DNA of 64,000 bases, taken from the NCBI GenBank assembly GCA_964035545.1, contig OZ037766.1:23734767-23798766 (forward strand). Reading direction: 5' to 3'. Below the pieces are notes generated by a model. That model did not search any database, was not told where the DNA came from, and saw nothing but the letters and a program-made list of their open reading frames with translations. Made by a program: the position numbers and the translations under genes. Shown one piece after another: positions 16,701-19,700 of this stretch (positions are counted from its first letter, which is position 1; each line of letters starts with the position of its first letter). The stretch comes from Bugula neritina (taxonomy: Eukaryota; Animalia; Bryozoa).

Positions 16701-19700
16701 CATTTACATCTACAAAAACATTACATATAAACCTTCACATTATTGTAAAACAATTCACTATTATGATAAAAAGTATCAAAATACATTTAAAAAAAAAATC
16801 AAATAATGATATGAATTACAACACATCTTGACTATAAGATACAACACTCACTATTGCAAATATATCCATCTCCAGTGTAACCATCATTACATTCACATGT
16901 GTAAGAACCAACAGTGTCTGTACAATTAGCGTTGGGGTGACAGCTGTTGGGTGTTCCCTTCAAACACTCATTTACATCTACCGAAACATTTTATACAAAA
17001 CTTTATTTTATTGTAAAACAATTAACTGTTGTGATAAAAATTATCAAAATACATTTCGAAAAAAATCAAATAGTGATATGAATTACAACACATCTCGACT
17101 ATAAGATATAAAATTACTCACTATTGCAAATATATCCATCTCCAGTGTAACCATCATTACATTCACATGTGTAAGAACCAACAGTGTCTGTACAGTTAGC
17201 GTTGGGGTGACAGCTGTTGGGTGTTCCCTTCAAACACTCATTTACATCTACAAAAACATTACATATAAACCTTCACATTATTGTAAAACAATTCACTATT
17301 ATGATAACAAGTATCAAAATACATTTAAAAAAAATCAAATAATGATATGAATTACAACACATCTTGACCATAAGCTATAAAATTACCCACTTTTGCAAGT
17401 ATAACCATCTCCAGTGTAACCATCATTACATTCACATGTGTAAGAACCAACAGTGTCTGTACAATTAGCGTTAAGGTGACAGCTGTTGGGTGTTCCATTT
17501 AGACACTCATTTATATCTACCGAAACATTTTGTACACAACTTCACTTTATTGCAAAACCATATAAATCAAATAATGATATTGTATTGGTATGCCACCCAG
17601 ATGTATTGGCAGGCAGCCAATCATTAAAGCTTTCAAGCTTCAAAGCTTTCACCAAAGCTACTATCAGCTGGCAGAGCTAGTGCATTCACTGTAATGCATG
17701 AGTCAGTGTATCATGATCAAACCGCCATATTTACACTCTTTGTAAGAATAAACTATCGGTTTCGGTATTGTGATGGCTAAGAATTTTACCTACGCATCAA
17801 TATTGTAAGTTTATTAGAATTATAATAGTTCATGTCAATTTGTTTGGTTCTGTAATGTTCATGGTGTTCCTCTGAATTTTGATTTATATTTCTAATGTTT
17901 CCCATTTTTCTAGGGTACGATTTGACAGTTAATAAACTCGAAAACCCGTTGCCAAGTTGGCTAGTAGTTAAAGCATATCTTGCAACCAGACACAAACACA
18001 AACCGATACAGTACCAATATTGATGCGTAGGTAAAATTCTTAGCCATCACAATACCGAAACCGATAGTTTATTCTTACAAAGAGTGTAAATATGGCGGTT
18101 TGATCATGAGCGGTGTGGGCGGGGGTCACGTTCAGACGGCGCGAGTCATGCACCGACTATGGTCGTGTCGAGTCGGTTGTTTCCTCCTAGATCACAGCCT
18201 AGCACACATGAGGCTACTCTTGCACCAAATCCAGGTATCACAGCAAGCGGTAGTGATACGCAGGTACTATGGGAAGATCACACATCCGGTGAAGCTTTGG
18301 CATCAAATCCAGGTGTCATAGCAAGTACCAATGTCAGAGATGTTCGTTCTTCTACGTTCTCAGTACGTGATCTACAAGGTGGTACTGATCGTGCAGCTCA
18401 TTCTGAATTTTTGATTCGCGACGCAACTTCCTCGGTTGTCAATGCATATGATAGCTACCCTAATAGAACTAGTCAAATAAGTTATGACTCTAGACATACA
18501 GGTGGAAATAACTTCAATCCATCTATACATAAAACTCATTCACAACCCAAGCCATTTAACGGCACTAGATACCATTGGCCGGAATTTAGGTCAGTGTGGC
18601 TAAGGTATGCCACTATGTTTTACGATGATGTCGATAGGGCTTGTGAATTAAAAAAATTTCTCACAGGCGAAGCTCTGGAGATGGTTCAGCCAATCTTCGC
18701 AACTCAGCCTCAAGCTTACGAGAGAATGATGTGTAGATTAGAAGAGGTCTACAATGATGCTAGCATGAGTGTGCAAGCAGTCTTCAACAATCTACAAGAA
18801 CTAAAGCCAGTAAGGGAAGGAAATGCACGAGAACTCGTCAAAATGGCTAACGCAGTGGAAAGCTCGTACAGCCAACTCGGTGAAGTGGGACTTTTGCAAA
18901 CTGTTACGCTGCCACAGGTCGATACTCTTGCAAACCTATTACCTACAAGCATTAGACGGGACTGGGATAGACACTTTCACATACTTACTCACGAGGAGAG
19001 AATCAAGCCATTCCCACACCTTATGAGGTTTCTAGAGCAGGAACGGCAGATAGCCCTCAGACGCATAGAAACCGTCAACCCGCAGTCCTCCAGTATGAAA
19101 AAACAGAAGGTGAAAGCGTTCCACACTGAAAGTAGTGACCCAAAGCCTAGTAGTAACAGGTCTACTAATAATAGTAAAATCATTGATAGTAAGAATTACT
19201 GTTTTATTCATCGCAGTGAGCGTCATTGTCTTGTTGAGTGCAGAAATTTCTTGGCGTTGTCTGTAGATGAAAGATACAAGTTAATAAAAACTAATTCTCT
19301 ATGTGTTAGGTGCTTGGGTGCCCATAGCCTAAGTGCTGTCCAAATTTCCGAACCCCTTGTTCAGTCTGTGATAAAACAACCCACCATGTATTATTGTGCA
19401 TCAAATCAGCTGAAACTAATACGCATACCAATCGTAATACCAACAAGAGTAAAGAAAAAACTGATCAAATTAAGCACAAGAGTAACGAGAATTTTGAAGC
19501 GTCCGCTGTTAGCACCACGGTCCATGTGTCTCCTAATCATGGAGCGCACAATCATCCAGGAAATGCTACAGTATTTGCCATTCAGCAGGCCCAAGTAGTA
19601 GGTACATCTCATACAGCCATTTTATTCTTTGACAGCGGATCCAATGCTTCATTCATATCGGAGAGAGCTGCTAAAGCGTGGGGTGCGCGACAAATAGATA

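Follow-up and report, generated by a model that had tools for sequence, protein, structure and literature searches.

Primer-binding sites complementary to a putative splice junction suggest Tf1-like self-priming in BEL/Pao retrotransposons of Bugula neritina

We analysed a 64,000-nucleotide (nt) stretch of the genome of the bryozoan Bugula neritina (assembly GCA_964035545.1, contig OZ037766.1, positions 23,734,767 to 23,798,766 of the forward strand; hereafter the window), which carries two retrotransposons of the BEL/Pao superfamily, elements 1 and 2, each bounded by long terminal repeats (LTRs). For 8 of the 9 BEL/Pao families sampled in this genome, the first 10 to 13 nt after the 5' LTR are the antisense of a split junction in the element's own LTR, composed of the 5 to 8 nt before a GT and the 5 to 7 nt after an AG. 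Two elements from other assemblies (L045 and L051) show a split-junction complement as well. We consider it probable, from the comparison of DNA sequences, that most BEL/Pao families here prime their own reverse transcription with a piece of their own spliced LTR RNA, as the Tf1 retrotransposon does with its own RNA. The sequence matches, their boundaries, their co-variation and the scars at their edge are observed directly.

Element 1 has the BEL/Pao domain set (DUF1759 gag, DUF1758 protease, the Pao reverse transcriptase (RT) model PF05380, integrase and DUF5641) and represents a defective BEL/Pao LTR retrotransposon, having lost approximately 1.1 kb of its protease-RT region. Its LTRs are approximately 98% identical, with a 22-nt indel between them: the 5' LTR has a 22-nt deletion within the putative intron that neither the 3' LTR nor other copies share. 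A second internal rearrangement lies at 20113-20559, where approximately 447 nt that cannot be aligned to an intact family copy replace approximately 1.5 kb of the protease-RT region. A first-pass annotation of the window had proposed that the sequence after the 5' LTR of element 1 pairs over 99 nt with the spliced RNA of that LTR and acts as its primer-binding site. The match is indeed present. Positions 18016-18109 are the perfect reverse complement of LTR positions 17711-17804 (94 of 94 nt), a repeat also found by independent comparison, and GTACC at 18011-18015 is antisense to GGTAC at 17914-17918. The pentamer GGTAC is unique within this LTR and stands directly after ...TTTTTCTAG; among the 10 AG sites in 17805-18010, only that at 17912-17913 is followed by it (17900-17913 reads TCCCATTTTTCTAG). 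The pairing ends exactly at the LTR boundary, as had been claimed, the limits of the LTR being set independently by its TGT..ACA ends and by the GATAT target-site duplication. There is no TGG tRNA-type primer site after the 5' LTR; the site starts with GT directly at the LTR edge.

What did not survive is the role given to the full 99 nt. The genome contains more than 40 LTRs of this family (family 1; 91% to 94% identity), and 16 standard full-length copies carry just the 12-nt complement GTACCAATATTG behind the 5' LTR, then one variable base, TGAGGCTGAC and the gag ATG. Intact copies encode a single polyprotein of approximately 2036 amino acids (aa); an exact-protein look-up of this polyprotein, aimed at transcript contigs of the species, returned no match. 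Compared with an intact copy, positions 18023-18107 of element 1 replace approximately 620 nt of leader and gag N-terminus. Since the standard copies carry only the 12 nt and element 1 is defective, the 99-nt match belongs to a dead copy. There is strong comparative support for the 12-mer, antisense of the 7 nt that lead up to the donor joined to the 5 nt behind the acceptor, as the probable working primer site of family 1. Nearly all of 30 family 1 LTRs retain both donor and acceptor, and indels are tolerated only inside the putative intron (in the element 1 LTR pair and in the scored LTR sets). The start of the long match at 17711 could mark the 5' end of an RNA or simply the place of a template switch. 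In family 1, CAATATTG is self-complementary and present at both 18015-18022 and 17798-17805, so that the 87-nt extension beyond the 12-mer is by itself no proof that spliced RNA was copied. The case for splicing is therefore made by the junction complements of multiple families, not by the 99-nt match.

A further 14 full-length BEL/Pao elements were sampled, with at least one per open reading frame (ORF) class among the PF05380 matches (65 genomic matches). A script took the bases following each 5' LTR, formed their reverse complement and looked in the same LTR for a two-part match, x nt followed by GT plus y nt preceded by AG; in every test it was the reverse complement of the actual primer site that was divided in this way. 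Most sampled elements have LTR pairs that are 99% to 100% identical and 5-bp target-site duplications, and TG..CA LTR ends with 5-bp duplications were confirmed for element 1, element 2 and L031-L043. Split complementarity between LTR GT..AG boundaries and the first internal nucleotides recurs (junctions in Table 1). The unspliced LTR gives a complement of only 5 to 8 nt. GT..AG boundaries and T-rich tracts are found in all conforming families, with putative introns of 94 to 221 nt across the conforming elements, and in all 10 cases the complement starts at the first base after the LTR edge, which is set by the target-site duplication. The base after the exon 2 part is G (..AC^G) in the families of this genome, with AC^A in L045 and AC^C in L051 (the caret marks the putative cut). 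AATAAA lies 12 to 35 nt past this cut in 6 of 9 elements; it was not found within 40 nt of the cut in L035/38, and L045 has only AATATAAA. In element 1, AATAAA 13 nt after the putative cut places the intron inside R. Among 7048 control 16-mers from inside the same elements, a split match of at least 11 nt was obtained for 0.43% and one of at least 12 nt for 0.17%. Primer-site sequences differ between families, and site and junction change together. No TGG-type or other alternative primer site is common to the families, and no tRNA or Rfam match was found within the window, a result that does not extend to the host's full tRNA set. The family-specific sites exclude a common host primer. Separately, the 3' LTR of L044 (G000:C2:1814277-1824276) lacks 334 nt present in its 5' LTR; this deletion, between AAAGTGTT repeats, takes the end of exon 1, the intron and the acceptor and is not a precise intron loss.

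Two relatives in other assemblies show the same relation. The closest outside relative of family 1 (P0001 on European Nucleotide Archive (ENA) contig L045; 58% identity) has an LTR with TCAATTTT/GTAAGT ... ATCAG/GGTAC (slashes mark putative splice boundaries), followed by the primer site GTACCAAAATTGA. Its exon 1 differs from that of family 1 by one A/T change, which the primer site mirrors with a compensatory change, and the sequence is not palindromic. The two LTRs are otherwise diverged. Conserved are the LTR ends and approximately 35 nt plus the donor, with further islands formed by the acceptor plus GGTAC and by the end of U5 plus the primer site. A second copy of this relative (L055:553-836) has a 5' LTR lacking approximately 600 nt between U3 and a point 5 nt short of the acceptor, with an unchanged primer site. 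The more distant P0004 (L051) has AGTCG/GTAAGG ... GTAG/AAAAC and the primer site GTTTTCGACT, with a later G-to-C change in the 5' LTR copy. P0008 (L047), a still more distant BEL/Pao relative, has a TGG-initial site of approximately 19 nt, 3 nt after the LTR, which demonstrates that the method is able to see such classic sites. L046, L048, L049, L050, L052 and L053 were not counted (LTR ends incomplete or undefinable), nor was L054, which has at best an ambiguous 9-nt match. A provisional FastTree phylogeny places the junction-type elements in two deep groups and the tRNA-type L047 with insect and nematode sequences. We lean towards the view that a deep lineage of animal BEL/Pao elements, or two, uses a 10- to 13-nt self-primer that would exist only after an intron in the R region has been spliced out.

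In any LTR element, it is the 3' end of the minus-strand primer that sets the LTR/internal boundary. Ten independent complements, each starting right at the LTR edge, are the trace expected of a primer. Moreover, each replication cycle copies the primer site anew from the primer, so that site and junction would change together and the site would be a DNA copy of the joined exons. The idea of splicing-dependent self-priming with Tf1-like geometry, first put forward for element 1 with its 99-nt match as the working site, keeps its core, with strong comparative support from 8 of 9 families and 2 outside elements, and loses the long match.

From these relations we infer splicing, a cut, pairing in cis or in trans and a position for the primer 5' end, which may be ordered as follows. 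Transcription would start in the LTR, and the 5' intron copy would be spliced from the leader. The spliced junction would then fold back, or pair in trans, onto the primer site 79 to 134 nt downstream, forming an RNA duplex of 10 to 13 bp. By analogy with Tf1, where RNase H acts on the element's own duplex, the RNA would be cut after the conserved ..AC, and the new 3' OH would be extended through 79 to 134 nt of U5 and a short R segment up to the cut. The strong-stop DNA could transfer to the 3' R via the 30 to 60 nt between the cut and the poly(A) site, and synthesis would proceed through the unspliced 3' intron. The intron in the 3' R must still be present at this stage, because progeny LTRs keep it. 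The primer 5' end could be the cap site, with an exon 1 of 5 to 8 nt, or the product of a second cut. In the sharper version, the primer may be the capped 5' end of the spliced RNA, exon 1 being only those 5 to 8 nt. TATA-like motifs are inconsistent in this respect, lying 24 to 35 nt upstream of the complement in several families and 50 to 60 nt upstream in others.

The distal edge of the complement carries scars. Position 13 differs in 6 of the 16 family 1 copies, even between close relatives, compared with 0 to 2 copies for each of the other 59 columns. In-register antisense extensions are present in the window copy (87 nt) and in L040, where the 16 nt match the LTR variant of that copy; in both, a microhomology jump and a deletion in gag come after the extension. 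No long antisense extensions were found among 40 scored L031-type matches, a non-palindromic family. A discrete primer 5' end fits the scars at this edge, and together they fit a short discrete primer with occasional run-on of plus-strand strong-stop synthesis; the 87-nt extension looks like a by-product of reverse transcription. For the window copy, plus-strand synthesis would have run past the normal 12 nt along LTR-derived RNA, after which microhomology would have let the run-on strand return to the minus strand farther downstream, at the cost of the gag N-terminus.

A third kind of scar at the same edge is seen in L035:1288-1323, where the 11-nt primer site GTGAAACTCTT is duplicated with a 14-nt filler between the copies; it is single in the near-identical L038. 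Other rearrangements affect L031-type LTRs. At G000:C6:2106114-2107612, two L031-type LTRs stand head-to-head (1-730 forward, 720-1 reverse, 697-744 forward), a snap-back-like rearrangement that turns within U5. Near G000:C8 3409297-3412203 and 4109316-4112186, at least two L031-type LTRs are split by approximately 2.2 kb near LTR position 603-611, which falls in the putative intron; for a third, near 4040458-4041269, the difference is only approximately 80 nt. This L031-type variant with an intron insertion seems to have been propagated.

For the 87-nt extension only, there is a second route. Plus-strand strong-stop DNA ending in CAATATTG could have annealed to the donor palindrome of unspliced LTR RNA and copied that RNA backwards, in which case the long inverted repeat says nothing about splicing. 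The self-complementary octamer is present at both sites, and such a switch would yield exactly the structure observed. However, it would leave unexplained the 12-nt core of family 1 and the junction complements in seven other families and in the non-palindromic L045. L040 is a second, independent in-register extension, and read-through of a covalently attached primer is simpler. We regard this route as possible but rather unlikely.

A less probable alternative, to which we give little credence, concerns all families: the junction-complementary 10- to 13-mer would be a cis-acting RNA element with another job, such as drawing donor and acceptor close to each other, masking them, or controlling packaging, dimerisation or translation, and reverse transcription would be primed by something else, for example an internal tRNA fragment or another host RNA. 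The same pairing could form on unspliced RNA as two half-helices of 5 to 8 bp, and the loop region has no Tf1-like structure. Such an element would not account for a complement that begins, in 10 of 10 cases, exactly at a boundary made by a primer 3' end, nor for the strand-transfer-type scars that map to the edge of the complement; the families share no alternative primer site, and their family-specific sites exclude a common host primer. Finally, mis-assembly or post-insertion rearrangement as the source of the inverted repeat, with GGTAC following the acceptor by chance, is hardly credible: a 5-nt match does have a chance of a few percent given approximately 10 AG sites, but the relation recurs with different sequences at many loci, on many contigs and in other assemblies, the target-site duplication is clean, and L040 is a second copy built in a similar way.

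Several observations weigh against self-priming by spliced LTR RNA. It leaves the escape of the 3' R intron from splicing without explanation. No intron-less LTR was found among the approximately 80 higher-ranked LTR matches scored for two families, so that selective splicing or a requirement for the intron would be needed. The segment between cut and primer site has no significant stem-loop like that of Tf1 U5 in four families (z of +0.9 to -1.5). In family 1, the palindrome could mediate the long extension without spliced RNA. Lastly, L036 has no canonical split complement, though it is nested among conforming families. Its site, GTAAGAAACTCAACC, yields only a split of TTGAGT plus TTCTTAC (6+7) without GT/AG, which is compatible with chance. 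L036 itself (G000:C7:14951660-14961659) is a young BEL/Pao element with identical LTRs of 1086 nt and an ORF of 1967 aa.

The closest known system is Tf1. PMC4600332 states that Tf1, Tf2, Tj1 and the Tf1/sushi group of Ty3/gypsy self-prime (Levin 1995, 1996; Lin and Levin 1997; Butler et al. 2001), and that the Tf1 primer is 11 nt of the element's own RNA, released by an RNase H cut in its own RNA duplex (scheme in PMC5341516). As in these elements, there is no tRNA primer site here, and a short stretch of the element's own LTR RNA would pair with a site abutting the 5' LTR. By the same analogy, the primer 3' end would adjoin U5, demanding a cut in an RNA duplex, and the site would be regenerated from the element's own RNA. 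Unlike in Tf1, the complement is non-contiguous in the DNA, being split by a GT-AG intron of 94 to 221 nt, and would be whole only in spliced RNA; and whereas the very 5' end of the mRNA is the primer in Tf1, here the primer may or may not be the 5' end of the RNA. The domains are those of BEL/Pao and not of Ty3/gypsy, so these elements would work like Tf1 yet stand outside the Tf1/sushi lineage. With the tRNA-primed BEL/Pao element L047 they share superfamily, gene order, domains, TG..CA LTRs and a short target-site duplication, but where L047 has a TGG-type site 3 nt after the LTR, the sites here start with GT at the LTR edge and match the element's own LTR in its putative spliced form. Splicing of retroviral leaders from a donor in or near the LTR is familiar, for example from human T-cell leukaemia virus type 1 (HTLV-1), whose donor lies in R. 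A spliceosomal signal inside a terminal repeat, putative in the present elements, is common to both. In the HTLV-1 type, by contrast, the donor alone is in the LTR, splicing yields subgenomic mRNAs and priming is by tRNA.

The surroundings of the elements add some further observations. Both BEL/Pao elements of the window lie antisense to a minus-strand host gene (15000-17650, 23185-25244 and 29896-30000), which consists of 232/270-nt units in tandem; the single exon of every unit encodes a calcium-binding epidermal growth factor (EGF)-like domain. They sit in the intron part of different units, with insertion points approximately 17 nt apart in the register of the host repeat. Before the 3' LTR, neither element 1 (22735-22751) nor L039-L041 has a purine-rich tract; a conserved C-rich run, CGACCCCACCGA, is found instead. 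The outside relative L045 likewise has a C-rich run, CCCCCACCCCTCCGA, and no purine-rich tract, and all families except family 1 and this relative have AAGGTGGGAG or AAAGGGGGGAG at this place.

Table 1. Features of the two BEL/Pao elements in the window and junction complements of the sampled families. Slashes mark putative splice junctions or boundaries and carets putative cuts.
Feature	Position	Strand	Remarks
Element 1, target-site duplication GATAT, left copy	17576-17580	+	right copy 23204-23208; sets LTR ends
Element 1, 5' LTR	17581-18010	+	430 nt, TGT...ACA
Putative exon 1, at least its 3' part	17711-17804	+	LTR segment 5' of donor
CAATATT, last 7 nt of putative exon 1	17798-17804	+	part of putative 12-nt primer
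Putative LTR intron	17805-17913	+	GTAAGT donor, CTAAT 17892-17896, T-rich tract, TAG acceptor 17911-17913
GGTAC, first 5 nt of putative exon 2	17914-17918	+	predicted primer 3' end
Putative cut AC^G	between 17918 and 17919	+	
AATAAA poly(A) signal	17931-17936	+	13 nt past putative cut; layout recurs in other families
Core of putative primer-binding site, GTACCAATATTG	18011-18022	+	antisense of CAATATT/GGTAC; common to all family copies
Copy-specific 87-nt extension	18023-18109	+	antisense of 17711-17797, in register with core
Junction back into gag	18108-18110	+	1-2 nt microhomology (GA) with standard sequence
Truncated gag ORF	18159-19598	+	479 aa, DUF1759
pol ORF	19394-22522	+	1042 aa; DUF1758, end of Pao RT model, integrase (zinc domain), DUF5641
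Element 1, 3' LTR	22752-23203	+	452 nt, TGT..ACA
Element 2, BEL/Pao, 5' LTR	25160-25700	+	target-site duplication CCATA; sequence unrelated to element 1
Element 2, donor ATAGAG/GTATGT	25518/25519	+	
Element 2, acceptor TAG	25610-25612	+	exon 2 start TTTCAC^G at 25613-25618
Element 2, putative primer-binding site, GTGAAACTCTAT	25701-25712	+	antisense of ATAGAG/TTTCAC (6+6)
Element 2, 3' LTR	29346-29896	+	
Family 1 junction			CAATATT/GGTAC, 12 nt
L031 junction			ACAAG/TTTTCAC, 12 nt
L032/37/42 junction			TAAAG/ATTTCAC, 12 nt
L033 junction			AAAGAG/TTTTTAC, 13 nt
L034/43 junction			ATAAAG/TTTTTAC, 13 nt
L035/38 junction			AAGAG/TTTCAC, 11 nt
L044 junction			CAAAAG/ACTTCAC, 13 nt

For any LTR retroelement, the choice of primer is a defining point of its life cycle, and to our knowledge the only established primers are host tRNA, whole or as a fragment, and Tf1-type self-priming. 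A literature search (full text and BEL/Pao surveys, covering few subscription journals) found no self-priming in BEL/Pao and no junction-spanning primer site. Should this reading hold, the Tf1/sushi group of Ty3/gypsy would no longer be the only one with self-priming, and an element whose reverse transcription cannot begin until its RNA is spliced would be without precedent. Annotation pipelines that seek tRNA-complementary sites will score such elements as lacking a primer site, and a split-complement search would recognise them. The proposal raises the puzzle of how the 5' intron copy would be removed while the 3' copy is kept. A primer assembled by the spliceosome would couple the start of reverse transcription to nuclear RNA processing, and would explain why an intron persists inside a terminal repeat.

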